64,000 nt of DNA, taken from positions 5,270,001 to 5,334,000 of the forward strand of contig CP075492.1 of assembly GCA_021613535.1 (NCBI GenBank). Direction: 5' to 3'. Both the position numbers and the translations under genes were made by a program. Every line of letters starts with the position of its first letter. Within the stretch, counting starts at the first letter, position 1. Source of the DNA: Adineta vaga (Eukaryota; Animalia; Rotifera). This document shows, in pieces, positions 14,117 to 28,191 of this stretch. Under the pieces are notes generated by a model. That model was given only the letters and a program-made list of their open reading frames with translations, was not told the DNA's origin and ran no database searches.

Positions 14117-15371
14117 TCAAATTAAAGTATATTTAGCAACTCTATTATATCCATACATAATTACATATAGATCACCATTATTTAGATCCAAAGCAATTGA
14201 TGCAAAATAGTCTGCAATATAATCATCATTCTCTCCAGCCATGTATGTATGTTCCCAAGCCGATGAAGTACGAGGATTGTCTAAAATATTCTGTATTGTA
14301 TTAATAGCATATCCCGTCGAATTATAAATAATTAATGATGCTTGACTATCGATTGTATACAAATTACCATTACAATCACCTACAATTGCCAATGGGCTTG
14401 GCTTTACTTGCATCACTGTATCTGCATATCTACTATCTTTTGCCATTCGTTGTACTCGAAAATATTCCATATCGATAGCAAAATAATTCAATTTCGAATC
14501 AATATAAGTATTCGCTGTACCAGTTGGTAATGTTCCTGAGATTTCTCGTTCTCCAAAAACTCTCTTCATTATTGATTCTTTATACGTGGGTGCTAAATAT
14601 ATCCAAAGATTAACTCCCGATGCAAAATATACATTTAAATCTTTATCGATATTAAAACTTGAGAATCTTCCAAATTGTACGAGCAATTCTGTACCATTTT
14701 CTAATAATGATGATGGCCAAACAATAACATGATTATACCGTTTAGAATCCTCATGATATGTATATAAAATATCATTTTTATCGATAGCTAATCCAAGAAA
14801 GTTATCCATTGTCGGATATCGTTCGATTCCATTTCCAATAACTACTTGTCCTATTTGAGAGTTGGGTGTGTATTTCAAAACACGTCGATTACCAGAATCG
14901 AATACATAGAAATTGTGTCGACTATCGACAACAACGGTCAATGGCTTATCGAGTTCATAAATAGTTGATCCTCGTGATTCATTTCCAGCAACAATTATTT
15001 TATTTGTACTATATCGCGGATACAATGGAAGTGAACAACCATTTGTTTTTGTTATATTTTCTGGAACTATAAAATAGAAAATAGTTAACGAGTATGGAAC
15101 GTATGTATTACTTTTTCTTACTCAAACTTGTCGATGTTACTACTCGCGTAGTACTTGTTTGCAGATCAGAATGATTAGTCGATGACGTTGTTGGTACATC
15201 TTGTATTTTCGTTTTCTTTGAAACGATAAAAACTATACCTGATATTGATACGATAAGAACACATATTAAACCAATGATGAATATAATAACAATTTTTATT
15301 GGTGATTTTCGAGAAAATTCATAATTGAATTCATCACCATGTTGTGGTAAAACTTGTCCTTCAAAATTCAT
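14117..15371 (-). CDS. Type II membrane NHL/beta-propeller protein; exons 15371-15122, 15066-14117
   Basis: N-terminal TM IVIIFIIGLICVLIVSISGIVFIV, Ser/Thr stalk, NHL-like IIVAGNESRGSTIYELDKPLTVVVD...YVFDSGNRRV. Confidence 0.8.
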
Positions 15372-15553
15372 ATTGAATGTAAATATGTTAGTAATGTGAA
15401 TGTCTATAATTTGTGAAAGCAATGAAGTGGAACGAGAAATCAATTTCGATTTGTTACGAAACATTTTCTTCCGACGTGTTGAAAATAAAGAACGCAAAAA
15501 AAAGATTGTTTGTATTGATTATATTAGACTGTTTTCATAAAAACAGTATACTA

Positions 15554-17887
15554 ATGGGTTCGAACGTTTCTCAATCCGAGGGAATGATTATCGATGTTTT
15601 ACCTTTAAATAAAAATACGTCTCATCGACTTCGTTTTATTGATGAAACAATTGATTCATTTACATTAATATGGTTAGATATACAATCCAAAGGTAATGAT
15701 CTTGATTCATTACGTACAAAACGATTACTTTTAGAAATCAATCAAAAATGTTTATTCTATGATGATTGTCAATTATTCTTTCATGATATTGATCAAATGA
15801 AATTTGAAAATAAAAAAGTTCTTCTCATTGTCTCTGGATCATTCATTGAACTTGTACTTTCTCGATCTGGAATTAAAACTATCATTTCCATGATTATCAT
15901 TTTCTGTCGACATTATTATAAATATGCAAAGTTAAAAGAAGATGGTATTGTTGATATTTGTACCGATCATAGATCATTACAAAATTGTATTCAACGCGAA
16001 TTACCATCATTAAAATTAAATCTTTTCGAAAATCAACCATTAAAATCTTTATTATCATTCACAGAAAATACTTTAAATGATCGAATTTCTTTTACATATA
16101 TTCTATTTATTGAATTATTAAAACAAATGCCACAAACGAAACAAGTTCGAGAAATCATGTTAAATAAATGTAAAGATTATTATCGTGATAATAAATTTCG
16201 TTTACTCGAAATTAATAACTTTCATCAAACATATAAATCTAATCAAGCTTTAAAATGGTATACTCAAGATTCATTTATCTATCGATTAGTTAATCGAGCT
16301 TTTCGAACTGAAGATATCACTCTTTGGTATATATTTCGTTATTATATTATTGATTTATGTTTACAATTAGAAGATATTCATCGGCAGCAAGTCACCAAAT
16401 TTGGTCATCGTTCTTTAAGATTATTTCGTGGACAAGCACAAATGTTAACAACAGAATTAGACGATATTCAATCAAGAATTGGCAATCTTATTGTTACTAC
16501 TGGCTTTTTATCTACATCATTTGAATCAAATGTAGCAAATATGTTTGCATCAAGTGCACCACAAAGTGAAACATTCAAAGCCGTTTTATATGAGATTATT
16601 CTTGATACGGAAATTGCAAAGAATGTGATTTTTGTTGATGTTTTGGATTATCTTTCCTCACAAAATGAAGCAGCTGATATGCATATAGAAGAACGAGAGA
16701 TTTTGTTTAATATTGGTTCAGTATTTCGAATTGAAAATGTGCATTATGAATCATCAACAAATCTTTGGCATATTAAAATGGAAGCAACGGATAGAGATTT
16801 TAATCAAATTAAATTAGTTAAGAATAAATTTCAACATGGAAATCAAAATCTTCTTTTCGGTCGTTTATTATTGGATAGTGATCATTATGAAGAAGCAAAT
16901 TCATATTTTCAATTGATGATTAAAGTTCTACCGAAATCTCATCAAGATCTTGGTACTGTTTATGATGCAATTGGAAATTTAAATATGCGTATAACAAATT
17001 GGAATGAAGCTTTGAAAAATTTTCATCAAGCTTATGAAATAAAAAAGAAATTTTACGAGAAAAATCATCCTGAATTAGGTATAACATTAAATAATCTTGG
17101 AAATTATTATAAAGCAATCGAAGAGAATAATCGTGCATTGAATTTATATCATCAATCATTAGAATGCATTAATAACAATCGTTTGAATATTGCCGTAACG
17201 AAACTGAATATTGGAACTATCCTAAAAATTAATCATCAATATTTACAAGCATTAGAAAATTGTCATGAAGCATTTTCAATTTTACAACAAATCGAACCTT
17301 GTATGCATATAGAATTGATTACTTGTCAAGGTTCAATTGGAGATATTCATTATGCAAAAGAAGAATATGAGATAGCTGAAGTATTTTATCTTTCGGCATT
17401 CAATATGGCGAAAAAACATGTCTTCTTTGGTGATCGTTGTTTAATACATTGCATTAATGCATTAGCAGATACTTATGAACAACAAGATTCTGCAGATCGA
17501 CAACGTGCAAGTGAATTTTGTAATGAACAATTGATATTACATAAAAAATATCTACCTGAAAATCATGTTTCAATTGCATATATTCTAATGAAATTAGGTC
17601 AATTGTTAGATAAGATTGATTTCTATTTAGAAGCATTCTATATTTTTGAAAGAAATCTTTATCGAGAATATGCATCGACAGCAAAATGTTCGATATTAAT
17701 TGCACAATGTTATGATAAACATAAAATGTATGAAGAAGCTTTATCATTCTATACGAAAGCATATCAAATTCAAACAAAAATTTATCCAAAAAATCATTCG
17801 ATAATCAATGGAACTGAACAATTACTTACTATTGTTGAAAAACGATTTAAAGAACAATTAAGTTTTCAACAGACAAATCAATCTTGA
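15554..17887 (+). CDS. Mono-ADP-ribosyltransferase (R-S-E clade, C3/VIP2-like) plus TPR protein, intronless
   Basis: WYTQDSFIYRLVNRAFR, LFRGQ (R), GFLSTS (STS), EEREILF (ExE), then TPRs (HPELGITLNNLGNYY). Probable start MGSNVS is a myristoylation-like motif. Confidence 0.88.
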   Translation: MGSNVSQSEGMIIDVLPLNKNTSHRLRFIDETIDSFTLIWLDIQSKGNDLDSLRTKRLLLEINQKCLFYDDCQLFFHDIDQMKFENKKVLLIVSGSFIELVLSRSGIKTIISMIIIFCRHYYKYAKLKEDGIVDICTDHRSLQNCIQRELPSLKLNLFENQPLKSLLSFTENTLNDRISFTYILFIELLKQMPQTKQVREIMLNKCKDYYRDNKFRLLEINNFHQTYKSNQALKWYTQDSFIYRLVNRAFRTEDITLWYIFRYYIIDLCLQLEDIHRQQVTKFGHRSLRLFRGQAQMLTTELDDIQSRIGNLIVTTGFLSTSFESNVANMFASSAPQSETFKAVLYEIILDTEIAKNVIFVDVLDYLSSQNEAADMHIEEREILFNIGSVFRIENVHYESSTNLWHIKMEATDRDFNQIKLVKNKFQHGNQNLLFGRLLLDSDHYEEANSYFQLMIKVLPKSHQDLGTVYDAIGNLNMRITNWNEALKNFHQAYEIKKKFYEKNHPELGITLNNLGNYYKAIEENNRALNLYHQSLECINNNRLNIAVTKLNIGTILKINHQYLQALENCHEAFSILQQIEPCMHIELITCQGSIGDIHYAKEEYEIAEVFYLSAFNMAKKHVFFGDRCLIHCINALADTYEQQDSADRQRASEFCNEQLILHKKYLPENHVSIAYILMKLGQLLDKIDFYLEAFYIFERNLYREYASTAKCSILIAQCYDKHKMYEEALSFYTKAYQIQTKIYPKNHSIINGTEQLLTIVEKRFKEQLSFQQTNQS

Positions 17888-22124: not shown

Positions 22125-24161
22125 TCAATCAAAAACAATGTTGCAACTTTGACCACTTTGACATAGTTTTTGCATCGATGAGAAATCAATACCTAATGCA
22201 CAGTATTCTGGATGTTGAGGTAGAAACGTCTTAAACCACCATTTCGATTCAGGTAAAAGTGCAGGATGATTATCTGTAATACGTGTCAATACTCCCGTGC
22301 ATACAATTGGACATTGTGGATCATTAAAATCTAGAAAACTTTCTCCTTGACAGTCAATAAGCCATTCAATACAATCGTTTGATATGTTGGGATCGATCGT
22401 GCAATTATCAGTTCCTAAAGTTTCAGATCCTATTTTTTTAATACTTTCTGGATGAACACGACATTCCAATACAAACTGTACGTATTTACCCGTTTTGAAA
22501 AATTTATTTTGATTAGATGATTCAATGGGTTTTACTTCAGCATATCTAGGATGACCAGCGTAGTTCACAGATGGAGTAAGATATACACCAGACCCATGTG
22601 CTTTGACGTCAGCTGCCTTTAATCCATTAAGTAAAATAGATAATCCATGAGCAAATTTCGTTCCATGATAACCGATACACCAACCGTGAAATTGGGTATT
22701 AAAATTATCTGTCACATAGAATGAACGTCTTTGCCAACCAACAGGACAATAATACGGTTTATTTCCACGATTTTTGCCATCAGTGAGAGCACCTTTCCAG
22801 TAATCACAACCGAAAATATATTTACGATTAAATTGTGGATTCAATTTAATAGTAGCACGATGTTTTTGCGTTTTCCATAAATATTCTATAGGACCCAAAA
22901 ACATGAAAAACATCTTTGTTTTACCAAGTTCTTGTCGAGATTCATCGGTAAGTGAATGATAGATCAAATTTAAACATACATTTTTTTCCTTGGATTCAAT
23001 TTTATCAAGAACATCTAAATGTACTATAGCAGAACCTTGCTGAATTTGTTTGACTACAATATCTTTCATTTTTAGTTTAAATTTCTTACAGAACGACTCT
23101 AAAAATGGTTGTAATTCGAACGTTTTACAATCTTCATCAATGCCAAATACTAATGATGATGTTACTTTCGTATGCTTATCAAATATTTCATTAGCAACTG
23201 ATATCAATGGTTGCTTAGTTAGACGATAATATTCTTTACAATCTTCATAATAACTTTTTTCGTCAGGTGATAATGGTTTGTCTGTAAGGAATTGACCAGT
23301 TGTTAGAATAGGTTCTTCTACAATAGAAAAATAATCTATATATTCTATTTTTAAAGTCCTATCAAACTTACTTGGAGGAGGAGGAGGAGGAGGTGGAATG
23401 ACATAGTTCAAATAAATATCTCGTGTTTGTTGTAATCCATTCATAATCAATGGTCGTTGTCTTCTATTACTTTCTTGTGAAACATCATATGCGATACGTT
23501 CAAAAAGATCGACAATATGAATATTTTCTTGTTTGATATTTTTCAGTAAATGTTTGCTAAATAAATGATTCCGATCAATCTCATTAATACCACAAGCAAA
23601 TTGAATCAATACTCCATCCATTGTTTTCATTTCACATAAACCTTTGCTTTCACTGGCTGCTAAAACATGATTGAAACATCATTTTATGGTAACATTATTT
23701 TAATTCGATTACTTACAATTTGATGATGTTGCACTCTTGAATAAATACGTTCCTGGACAATCCAAGATAAAAGCATTTACATATGATGAATTTTTTTCTT
23801 GAATACGTTCGAGAATTCGTTGAAAATCAACAGCAAAATCTTCAATATCTCGATTTCTCTCTATATGATTATCATCAACCGGTATTAGATAGTTTTTATT
23901 TTTTACTTGACAACCATGACCAACGAAATAGAAGAAAATCAAATCATTATGAGAGATTATTTTTGCAAAATCAGTAATACACGTAGACAATTCATGTTTC
24001 TCCACATTACATGCCGTTGTCACATTAAAACCGATTGTTTTCAAAGAATCACCTAAACTTCTTGCATTTTCAATTGAACGTTCGAGACGATTTTCTGATC
24101 GATGATAATCACTATTAGCAATAATTAATGCTAATTTCCGATGACGAGATGAACTTGCCAT
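22125..24161 (-). CDS. Caspase-like (C14) domain, poly-Pro linker, SEA-like segment and PARP-like (H-Y-E, NEURL4-type) ART domain; exons 24161-23717, 23659-23372, 23317-22125
   Basis: KLALIIANSDY, FFYFVGHG, NYLIPVD, FILDCPG, LFSKHLL, QRP (C14 fold); QGSAIV; YYCPVGW, GYHGT, GVYLTPSVNYAGHPRYA, VQFVLECRVHP, IDPNISNDCIEW (ART). Confidence 0.85.
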
Positions 24162-24783: not shown

Positions 24784-26535
24784 ATGTTTAAGACAACATT
24801 AGAAACTTTATCTAATGAGTTATTTATCGATTTATTTGAATTTCTCAATGCTCCTGATGTTTTCCGTGCTTTCCATGGCCTGAACAATCGTTTTAATTCT
24901 CTTCTATTTCATCAAATGCATAGTTATTCTCTCGATTTTCGTTCAATTCCTAAAGACGATTTCGAACAATTCTGTCAAACATATCTTTCATCTATTAGTT
25001 GTCGAATAGCATATCTTCGACTCTCGGATGATGATGATACACCAAATGAATGTTCGTATTTACGTTGTTATAGTTTTACAATGAATCATTTTTCAAAACT
25101 TCATTCTTTAACATTTGATTCTATCAATTCAGATTCAACATTTTATAAAGTATTCTTATCGCATTTACATTGTCTTGATTATTTGAAATATTTAAAATTT
25201 ACTGACTGTTATTTTGATATTTCTTCAGAAGAATCTCAAGATCTTATTGATCAGATTTGGAATTTACCAAAATTAACACATTTATATTGTGGTATTATAT
25301 TTCGAAATGGTTATACATTCGATGCAACAAAGTCAGTTTCAACATCATTACACGATTTGACTATTGTTAAAAACAGCTGGTATGGAAATATATTTGGATG
25401 TTTATTAAACAGCACACCAAATTTGCAAAAATTCTGTACTGAATTGAATAATTACGATAGTGATCACAGACCACCATACAAAGAATTTATTTTCCCATCA
25501 CCACATCTATTGATGCATAAATTAATATTAACGAATGTACGTTCACGACGTGAAATGATATATTTTTTTACATTATTACCCAACATTAATTATTTAAAAA
25601 TCGAATTATTTTCAGTGACATTGGATGGATGTCAATGGGAAAAAATTATCAATCAATATTTACGTCGACTGAACATATTTCAAATGCGGATGTCCTTTGA
25701 TCTTGTTCTAGAAGATGAAGAAGAACGAGAGAATAAACAAATAGTTAATGATTATATGCAAACATATATGACATCTTTTTGGATTGATCGTCAATGGTAT
25801 ATTCGATGTCATTGGACAGTACATAAAAAAATCATTTCAATGAATATTTATACATTACCTTATTCATTCAATTATTTTTCGATGGATAAAAACGAATTCA
25901 ATTTTTCTACGGTATCAACTTGTCCAAATGATATGTTCTTTAATTATAATTCTATTCGTAATATTAGATATGAACCAGCAATATTCCATAACAAGATTTT
26001 CTCGCATACGACTATGAATGATACTACAACATTAGAAATTATATTTCCAATTGATGATCGATTTTTTACTCTTTTTCCAGCATTTAATCAGATGTTTTCT
26101 TTATGTATACATATATCATCAGTTCATCAACATGATCAAGTACAAAAATTACTTGACAATATGCCTCGTCTATACTCATTAGGATTCATGTCTTGGGACA
26201 CTCCAATTATGCCACCTTATGAATATACTAGTACATCAGTTCGTCGACTTGATCTTTGCGGAATGGATAAATCAACTCATAAGCATTATAAATACAATCA
26301 AGGACATTGTCGACTATTATGTCAATCATCATTAGGTAAACAATGTCGTGTATTAATCATCGATGTTAAAACAGCAATTAGTGTTTTATACTTAATTCAT
26401 CATATGAATAATCTTCGAACATTGAAAGTATCATATGAAGATAATGATCAATATTCTGAAATAAGTAGAAAACATTTACCAACCACATGGACAATTGCAC
26501 AAAAACGTCGTGGATATCTTATTCTTCACTCCTAG
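24784..26535 (+). CDS. F-box-like/LRR-like protein, intronless
   Basis: LETLSNELFIDLFEFL F-box-like start, LxxLxL repeats, IYTLPYSF motif shared with the 3586 gene. Confidence 0.8.
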   Translation: MFKTTLETLSNELFIDLFEFLNAPDVFRAFHGLNNRFNSLLFHQMHSYSLDFRSIPKDDFEQFCQTYLSSISCRIAYLRLSDDDDTPNECSYLRCYSFTMNHFSKLHSLTFDSINSDSTFYKVFLSHLHCLDYLKYLKFTDCYFDISSEESQDLIDQIWNLPKLTHLYCGIIFRNGYTFDATKSVSTSLHDLTIVKNSWYGNIFGCLLNSTPNLQKFCTELNNYDSDHRPPYKEFIFPSPHLLMHKLILTNVRSRREMIYFFTLLPNINYLKIELFSVTLDGCQWEKIINQYLRRLNIFQMRMSFDLVLEDEEERENKQIVNDYMQTYMTSFWIDRQWYIRCHWTVHKKIISMNIYTLPYSFNYFSMDKNEFNFSTVSTCPNDMFFNYNSIRNIRYEPAIFHNKIFSHTTMNDTTTLEIIFPIDDRFFTLFPAFNQMFSLCIHISSVHQHDQVQKLLDNMPRLYSLGFMSWDTPIMPPYEYTSTSVRRLDLCGMDKSTHKHYKYNQGHCRLLCQSSLGKQCRVLIIDVKTAISVLYLIHHMNNLRTLKVSYEDNDQYSEISRKHLPTTWTIAQKRRGYLILHS

Positions 26536-26903: not shown

Positions 26904-28191
26904 ATGGCTCAATTAGAAACGTTGTATGTATATTTCAAAAAATTACAGGCATTGTAACTGCTGTTTTGTAATAGATATGTACAGATTCGAACACGAAAAA
27001 AGAAGTGGTTGATATTCAGCATCAGTATAGTTGCTATGACAATAATAATTGTTCCTATTGTTTTAGAAGTGGCCGTAACAAAGAAAAAGACACATGTAAT
27101 CGAAACATCAACAACGACAACAAAAATTCTAACATCGACAATAACAACAGCACCTGCAAATATAACAATAGCAACAGGTATTTTGTTTCAGGAGTGAGAA
27201 TGGAGATCGAAATAATAAATTTAAAATTTATACGTTTACAGTCGTCAAAAACATCATTAATTTTCACATTGTCACTTCTTTTTATGCTACAGATAATGTC
27301 AATATTACTTGGAAACAGGATGGAATTACAGTTGCTGGAGGAAATGGACAGGGTGACAGAACAGATCAATTAAATAATCCTCTAGGTTTTGCTATCGATC
27401 GTAATTTTACCCTCTATATTGCTGATGTTGATAACAATCGGATTGTTAAATGGAAATTAAATGCGACCAATGGTGAAATTGTTATCGGTGGTACGAATCC
27501 AGAAAACGAAATAGACCAATTAAGCCGACCGACGGATGTAGTTATTGATCAAATAGACGATACTCTCATTATATGTGATTCGGCAAACAATCGATTGTTA
27601 AAATTACGTCATCCCAATCCCGATAACCAACCAACAATTACTTTTTCAAGTAGTTGTGATCTTCTAGCTATCGATATTGATGGAACTATATACATAACTA
27701 TTTCTTCGGAACATAAAATAAAACGATGGAGAAAAGGAGAATTAGATACAACAACAATAGCTGGTGGAAATGGATTTGGAGATCAATTGTTTCAATTGTA
27801 TGATGCTCGTTATACGTTCGTGGATAAAGAGTATTCACTTTATGTATCAGATACGTTTAATCATCGTATCATGAAATGGATGCAAGGTGCAACAAAAGGA
27901 ATCGTTGCTGCTGGACAAGGTGCGAAAAATAATTTGACACAATTGTCTTATCCTATGGGATTGCTTGTCGATGATTCAAATAATATTTATGTCGTTGATA
28001 GTATATATATGCAAGTAATACGTTTTTCTCAAACATCTGGCAAAAGTAGTATTATTGTTGGTGGATATGGAGCTGGAAGTGCTAGTTATCAACTTCATGA
28101 TCCTCAAGATATATTATTCGATCGACAAGGAAATCTTTATGTTGTCGATTGTTTTAACAATCGTATACAAAAATTTTCTATTCATAATTAA
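26904..28191 (+). CDS. Type II membrane NHL-repeat protein, 3 exons (26904-~26923, ~26975-27177, ~27293-28191)
   Basis: MAQLETL|YVQIRTRKKKWLIFSISIVAMTIIIVPIVL TM, Thr stalk, WKQDGITVAGGNGQG...QLNNP and further NHL repeats. Confidence 0.8.

Follow-up and report, generated by a model that had tools for sequence, protein, structure and literature searches.

A 64,000-nucleotide stretch of DNA from the bdelloid rotifer Adineta vaga (contig CP075492.1, positions 5,270,001–5,334,000; hereafter the window) carries a three-exon gene on its minus strand at positions 24161–22125, as read from the window together with a listing of its open reading frames. With both introns removed, the product is identical to the deposited A. 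vaga protein I4U23_012326, which is 641 amino acids (aa) in length. The protein has a caspase-fold head, a run of prolines, and a two-domain cassette that consists of a middle domain and a predicted ADP-ribosyltransferase (ART) domain of the PARP type. The reading favoured here, which appears reasonably likely, is that of a three-module protein of a kind that animals and bacteria use in immunity and in the signalling of cell death: a proteolytically dead MALT1-like head, a linker, and a cassette made of a TRADD-N-like adaptor and the ART. The sequence features listed in a preliminary description, which was made from the DNA letters alone, are all present on the minus strand at the positions where they had been placed. 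The pseudo-caspase and the ART of that description are supported by the analysis, but its self-cleaving SEA module is not. The full-length analyses used I4U23_012326, which equals the spliced model, and single exons were also searched separately.

The open frame from the ATG reaches position 23718, and the next long frame extends from 23659 to the stop codon. Codon 149 is split after its first base at the end of exon 1, which puts intron 1 in phase 1. The gene had been described as one spliced reading frame that joins a caspase-fold domain to an ART; this fusion is borne out, but the second intron (23371–23318) had been missed. The translation of the window differs from I4U23_012326 only by 18 residues after the proline run, at the site of intron 2. 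The 18 read-through codons have no counterpart in the paralogues, and intron 2 is therefore taken as a real intron. Its retention would lengthen the stretch from linker to cassette by 18 residues and leave the protein unbroken. Exon 2 is symmetric with respect to phase, as exon shuffling would predict, and exon 3 alone encodes the two-domain cassette, i.e., the RRM-fold domain and the PARP-like ART. The positions of the features are given in Table 1.

Table 1. Features of the caspase-ART gene of Adineta vaga, in window coordinates
Feature	Position	Strand	Remarks
Whole coding region, three exons	22125..24161	-	ATG at 24161; stop 22127-22125; 641 aa when spliced
Exon 1	23717..24161	-	aa 1-148 and first base of codon 149; p20-like C14 half; His82, D134-C135-P136
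Intron 1	23660..23716	-	57 nt; GTAAGT..TTTTAG; phase 1; within caspase domain; Pfam C14 match continuous across junction
Exon 2	23372..23659	-	288 nt; phase 1 at both ends; p10-like C14 half (to aa 222), then Pro8 linker
Intron 2	23318..23371	-	54 nt; GTAAGT..TTGTAG; phase 1; in frame, stop-free; border of caspase head and cassette
Peptidase_C14 (paracaspase-like) domain	23439..24140	-	aa 8-222; split by intron 1; His82 kept, Pro136 for canonical Cys
G-H-G His82 codon	23918-23916	-	
D-C-P-G, Cys135	23759-23757	-	
D-C-P-G, Pro136	23756-23754	-	
Pro8 linker	23373-23396	-	aa 237-244; eight prolines, ending exactly at the phase-1 intron 2
RRM-fold, TRADD-N-like middle domain	22845..23267	-	aa about 262-402; core b1-a1-b2-b3-a2-b4 at aa 299-386; Q337-x-G339-S340 in b2-b3 turn
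QGSAIV Gly339/Ser340	23036-23031	-	
PARP-like H-Y-E ART domain (predicted)	22224..22844	-	aa about 403-609; His462, Tyr490, Ser494, Tyr497, Glu562
YHGT His462	22667-22665	-	
VYLTPSVNY Tyr490	22583-22581	-	
IEW Glu562	22367-22365	-	
C-terminal tail, bdelloid-specific	22128..22223	-	aa 610-641; family H-x-C-x4-C-C...C cluster

The head belongs to the Pfam family Peptidase_C14 (PF00656). The full-length protein matches positions 1–225 of the 233-position profile (E 1.5e-21; 77.6 bits against a cut-off of 21.4), and exon 1 alone gives a match with E 2.9e-18. Since nearly the entire profile is covered over aa 8–222, the domain is complete and spans intron 1. Peptidase_C14 is the sole family found in a Pfam scan of I4U23_012326, with nothing significant after aa 222. 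The only sequence relatives of the head with solved structures are MALT1 paracaspases (best E 3.6e-8). In the alignment with MALT1, the G-H-G motifs coincide at His82 and the L-D-M-C of MALT1 lies over L-D-C-P. Pro136 is aligned with Cys464 of MALT1, which has Met at the position of Cys135. The rotifer head resembles MALT1 (Peptidase C14B) in its G-H-G and L-D-x-C blocks and in its single-chain, p20/p10-like layout. It differs in that the Death domain and immunoglobulin domains that flank the MALT1 protease are not found on the rotifer protein by the Pfam scan, and in that this copy has Pro for the catalytic Cys and is followed in the same chain by an adaptor and an ART.

The consensus among eleven full-length or head-only relatives is G-H-G and D-C-C. 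Residues of the head were counted in 23 sequences, after eleven exon-1-sized fragments had been added to the eleven relatives. Sixteen of the 23 retain the canonical second Cys and seven have lost it; the His is retained in 18 and lost in five. The first Cys (Cys135) is conserved in 21. The closest relatives have D-C-C-G-T-Y where the A. vaga gene has D-C-P-G-T-Y. The preliminary description was thus correct that the nucleophile position is taken by a Pro and that a Cys immediately precedes it, and its proposal of a pseudo-caspase is supported by a retained His82 and a Pro136 that replaces the canonical Cys. Judged by these residues, the head of this copy is probably a derived, proteolytically dead caspase fold in a family several of whose members have lost catalytic residues. 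cFLIP and other pseudo-caspases are comparable, in that the caspase fold is kept, the nucleophile is lost, and action by pairing or scaffolding is inferred. The rotifer protein differs from cFLIP in having no DEDs and in being fused in cis to a putative enzymatic effector, and for this protein pairing is only hypothetical. A predicted homodimer of the head has a score of 0.00, which is below the mark and speaks neither for nor against dimerisation. A word-indexed search with the head matched only exon-1-sized, rotifer-like fragments.

That the C-terminal domain has a PARP-type ART fold with an H-Y-E triad is well supported by its predicted fold and motifs, without a significant sequence match. 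An AlphaFold2 model of aa 236–641, built from an alignment of 115 family members, has a mean predicted local distance difference test (pLDDT) value of 90.1 and a predicted template modelling (pTM) score of 0.80. When the model was compared with the PDB by Foldseek, the first 50 rows were all PARP catalytic domains (PARP16, 4, 14, 10, 15, 2, 3 and 1), the best with E 3e-5. The named language-model neighbours of the ART are likewise PARP clusters. A permissive Pfam scan of 100 family members shows PARP as by far the commonest family (60 of 100, all below threshold, best E 5e-5). In this copy the match to PF00644 has E 0.15 and 12 bits, where the gathering score is 26.7, and it covers the stretch from H-G-T to G-x-Y. 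The H-Y-E pattern that had been pointed out in the preliminary description is nearly invariant in the family. His462 is found in 99 of 100 members, Tyr490 in 96, Ser494 in 99, Tyr497 in 100 and Glu562 in 98, the assignment of Glu562 as the catalytic residue being from motif order and conservation only. Gln525 and Arg531 are likewise kept in 96–100 members, and all of these residues are present in this copy. Because the triad is under strong constraint, the ART is presumably the catalytic output of the protein. A phmmer search of the PDB with the cassette returned only chance myoglobin rows.

Searched with a profile of the ART, a set of 1.8 billion cluster representatives yielded 832 clusters at E <= 0.001. 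The named relatives include further bdelloid subfamilies, the monogonont rotifer Brachionus, the foraminifera Reticulomyxa, Nonionella and Sorites, the green alga Cymbomonas (with an alpha-kinase) and the choanoflagellate Didymoeca (with a ubiquitin-like domain). This span indicates that the ART clade is broadly eukaryotic. The rotifer ART differs from the catalytic domains of the ARTD clade (PARP16, PARP10/14/15, PARP1–4) in several ways: it scores under the Pfam gathering threshold, it has a conserved N-terminal extension with a ..P-Y-Y-C-P-x-G-W.. block and a bdelloid-specific Cys/His tail, and it lies in a separate clade together with these foraminiferal, algal, choanoflagellate and Brachionus sequences. 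Each position of the tail cluster H-x-C-x4-C-C...C is 79–92% conserved in the family. Three of the five are missing from this copy (F609, P611 and Y616), which by this measure too is a divergent member overall. The cluster may be a metal-binding or disulfide motif, and in this copy it has been lost together with the caspase nucleophile.

The ART may also be compared with that at the C-terminus of NEURL4 (de Souza and Aravind 2012; Cardamone et al. 2022, PMC8932523), for which Pfam has no model (PMC7955679). Both are PARP-like ARTs of the H-Y-[EDQ] group that lie outside Pfam coverage. However, the triad of human NEURL4 is listed as H-L-E (PMC7955679), as opposed to H-Y-E in the rotifer family, and the Neuralized repeats of NEURL4 (PF07177) are not found on the rotifer protein by the Pfam scan. 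In the A. vaga genome, none of eight Neuralized-repeat matches is near any of 42 ART-profile matches, and this indirect check lends no support to the NEURL4 type suggested in the preliminary description. The Salpingoeca NEURL4 seed used in PMC7955679 was not encountered among 30 named distant relatives of the ART.

The middle domain was modelled both within the two-domain structure and alone. The model of aa 245–403 has a pLDDT of 89.5, and in both models the core is a b1-a1-b2-b3-a2-b4 sandwich, i.e., a predicted RRM-like, two-layer alpha+beta arrangement with a four-stranded antiparallel sheet. Gly339-Ser340 is in a tight b2-b3 turn between model strands 96–102 and 106–112. At this turn position Gly is present in 100 of 111 family members; the position after it holds Ser (89 sequences), Cys (16) or Pro (four) and no other residue. 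Structural neighbours in the ESM Atlas are sponge proteins of unknown function, dystroglycan (template modelling score, TM, 0.52) and an NCOA6 TRADD-N cluster (TM 0.52/0.49, root-mean-square deviation 3.1). These scores are all at the level of a common arrangement and are tied with those of RRMs.

The TRADD-N domain, as described by Kaur, Iyer, Burroughs and Aravind (2021, eLife, PMC8195603), is an RRM-like two-layer sandwich whose hallmark is a tiny residue followed by Ser, occasionally Cys, in the b2-b3 turn. It is placed between variable flanking domains that include caspases. Some animals have expanded sets of it, and oysters combine it with PARP14-like ARTs; dystroglycan appears as a weak profile match, which was attributed to the shared fold (PMC8195603). 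These published features are all seen in the rotifer domain, which bridges variable heads and a constant ART in a multiplied family, and it is therefore read as TRADD-N-like. The likeness extends to the caspase and ART partners and to lineage-specific multiplication with head swapping. There are also differences from the TRADD-N polydomain proteins of immunity and apoptosis. The rotifer domain has no statistically significant match to Pfam TRADD-like_N or NCOA6_TRADD-N, the ART that directly abuts the adaptor is from another PARP-like clade, and the protein has no Death-fold domain. The TRADD-N expansions have been described as restricted to marine animals, with rotifers unmentioned (PMC8195603), whereas the host here is a limno-terrestrial bdelloid.

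The Pfam TRADD-like_N profile (PF20694) gives a weak match in only three of 79 members (best E 0.017), and hhalign gives a probability of 0.3% against the TRADD-like_N exon of an NCOA6-like gene of A. vaga. A sequence profile of the ART has no match in the PDB. A profile of the middle domain likewise has no match in the PDB, a language-model search of the Atlas with this domain gave no usable match, and a word-indexed profile search added one more rotifer fragment and none outside rotifers. On its defining features, although without a significant sequence match, the middle domain fits a TRADD-N-type adaptor better than a self-cleaving SEA domain.

Some other matches in this region were observed. 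Baculo_FP domain 1 of Pfam is found below threshold in 28 of 79 members (best E 0.0028), and the entire 85-position profile is spanned. This resemblance may be due to a shared RRM-like fold or may be a true distant link; no Baculo_FP match was found in a search of the A. vaga genome, and a literature search on such a link found nothing. Two loci of A. vaga (G000:C1:8482400-8483800 and G000:C4:4000800-4002100) match Pfam TRADD-like_N above the cut-off and appear to be NCOA6-type genes interrupted by an intron; their turn motif appears to be N-S, by eye only. One alignment member has a Pfam ART match (NAD:arginine ADP-ribosyltransferase, E 4.7e-5) in the region aligned to the middle domain, and this suggests a variant with two types of ART.

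The cassette is widespread in bdelloids. A word-indexed protein search shows the adaptor-ART cassette in >120 clusters at 90% identity, from Adineta, Rotaria, Didymodactylos and environmental assemblies. The heads that precede it are the same caspase head, a TRAF zinc finger, FN3, SNTX-thioredoxin with FN3, NHL repeats and a kinase fragment. Many open frames contain the cassette only, which is consistent with its being a single exon. The A. vaga assembly searched (100.8 Mb, six contigs) has eight full-length cassettes, about eight broken ones and some 25 more distant PARP-like matches. A search for the same architecture, which the preliminary description had proposed along with a tabulation of the nucleophile, finds the caspase-ART chain in both Adineta and Rotaria. 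Its recurrence in these species at 45–57% identity places the architecture far beyond chance. The literature searched contains no account of TRADD-N or ART expansions in rotifers, or of a chain of caspase, adaptor and ART.

The caspase/PARP-like ART fusion is confirmed as real. A neighbouring caspase gene and an ART gene could be read as one by an error of annotation, and the gene structure is known here from DNA and protein models. This explanation is extremely unlikely, since the Pfam caspase domain extends 74 residues into the uninterrupted frame that codes for the linker, the adaptor and the ART, even with intron 2 retained, and since the architecture is kept in Adineta ricciae and three Rotaria species that were independently annotated. 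The caspase domain may instead be an active protease that uses Cys135 and His82, in which case the protein would be an effector with two enzymes, a protease and an ART. His82 is retained, Cys135 is highly conserved in the relatives, and the remaining C14 domain is intact, including the p10-like Q-F-A-C block. However, the residue aligned to the catalytic Cys of MALT1 is Pro, and at the position of Cys135 MALT1 has Met. The ancestral motif of the family is D-C-C, and the sole member without the first Cys (D-Y-C) keeps the second, which argues that the second Cys is the functional one. The losses of Cys and His among the relatives also point to relaxed selection on catalysis, and an active protease is considered unlikely. 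The ART in turn may be a non-catalytic pseudo-PARP that functions in binding or scaffolding, like PARP13 or TASOR, a reading under which the whole protein would be only an adaptor. The triad is gone from the known pseudo-PARPs (table in PMC7955679), whereas His, Tyr, Glu, Ser494, Tyr497, Gln525 and Arg531 are each kept almost without exception in the rotifer family and are all present here; this alternative is quite unlikely.

The SEA-like self-cleaving module proposed in the preliminary description needs to be weighed against the TRADD-N-like adaptor. In a SEA-type middle domain, a strained beta-hairpin would drive an N-to-O acyl shift that breaks the chain between Gly339 and Ser340. The protein would then remain a non-covalent heterodimer, and the ART fragment would be freed when the N-terminal fragment with the caspase head is removed or degraded. 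SEA domains do cleave in the b2-b3 hairpin (PMC10556640), and the alternation of Ser and Cys is the pattern expected of a nucleophile. The rotifer domain may resemble SEA and SEA-like domains (MUC1, MUC16, dystroglycan, IA-2 and cadherin MAD) in its predicted ferredoxin-like fold and in the G-S of the hairpin. However, the same motif at the same position defines TRADD-N domains, for which self-cleavage is not reported (PMC8195603), and the conservation of a Gly in a tight turn can have structural reasons alone. None of 79 members matches Pfam SEA at E up to 10, and the structural scores are no better than those of RRMs. The caspase domain begins at aa 8 and leaves no space for a signal peptide, and no hydrophobic segment is read in the sequence, so that the protein is presumably cytosolic and not membrane-tethered. 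Known SEA domains are extracellular. The SEA module is thus unsupported and appears rather improbable. A related and still less probable proposal is that the protein does cleave itself in cis at the G-[S/C] turn, with a chemistry similar to that of SEA domains and dystroglycan, and that the cassette works like the FIIND of NLRP1 and CARD8. In that very unlikely case the self-cleaved protein would stay assembled with the head as a bait for attack by pathogens or stress, and removal of the head would free an ADP-ribosylating death effector.

For the TRADD-N-like reading, a mechanism can be proposed in which the cassette would be the constant effector unit and the head an exchangeable input that is joined at a phase-1 intron. 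The dead head may provide a surface for recruitment or dimerisation, or serve as a decoy or bait, perhaps by pairing with catalytically intact paralogues. The pTM score of the two-domain model suggests that the TRADD-N-like domain packs against the ART and, by analogy with the published TRADD-N model, the adaptor would keep the ART inactive. An event at the head, i.e., engagement, oligomerisation or cleavage by an active partner, may reconfigure the adaptor through the conserved G-S turn. The freed ART would then use NAD+ to ADP-ribosylate itself or other targets, with an immune, stress or death output.

The window contains a single copy of the gene, and tandem paralogues were rejected. A context of horizontal transfer or an operon-like context was also rejected, as the neighbours are ordinary bdelloid genes. 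An 824-aa open frame at 15413–17884 (+), 4 kb from the caspase-ART gene, has strong TPR_12 repeats and a weak match to ADPrib_exo_Tox of the R-S-E type (aa 346–459, E 0.005), and is a second, unrelated type of ART-like gene. Open frames with NHL repeats flank the region at 27595–28188 (+) and 14120–15025 (-); NHL repeats are also an alternative head of the cassette in other species. A divergent 583-aa open frame at 24784–26532 (+), 620 bp upstream of the gene start, has no Pfam match.

Bdelloid rotifers are asexual, desiccation-tolerant and non-marine, and their innate immunity is poorly known. The components of this protein and their logic are already known, and the rotifer combination of caspase, adaptor and ART is a new variant. 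It would extend to bdelloids the adaptor-centred, head-swapping proteins of immunity and cell death that have so far been described in bacteria and marine invertebrates, in the form of a compact, one-exon effector cassette (adaptor and PARP-like ART) placed behind several sensor or recruitment heads. The cassette would be a convenient system for the role of the Gly-Ser turn and for the silencing and release of the ART, and the coupled loss of the caspase nucleophile and the tail Cys/His cluster allows a natural comparison with the intact paralogues that this genome also contains. If the FIIND-like self-cleavage were true, it would also provide a chemical function for the 'uS' motif, so far unexplained, that TRADD-N domains share from bacteria to humans.
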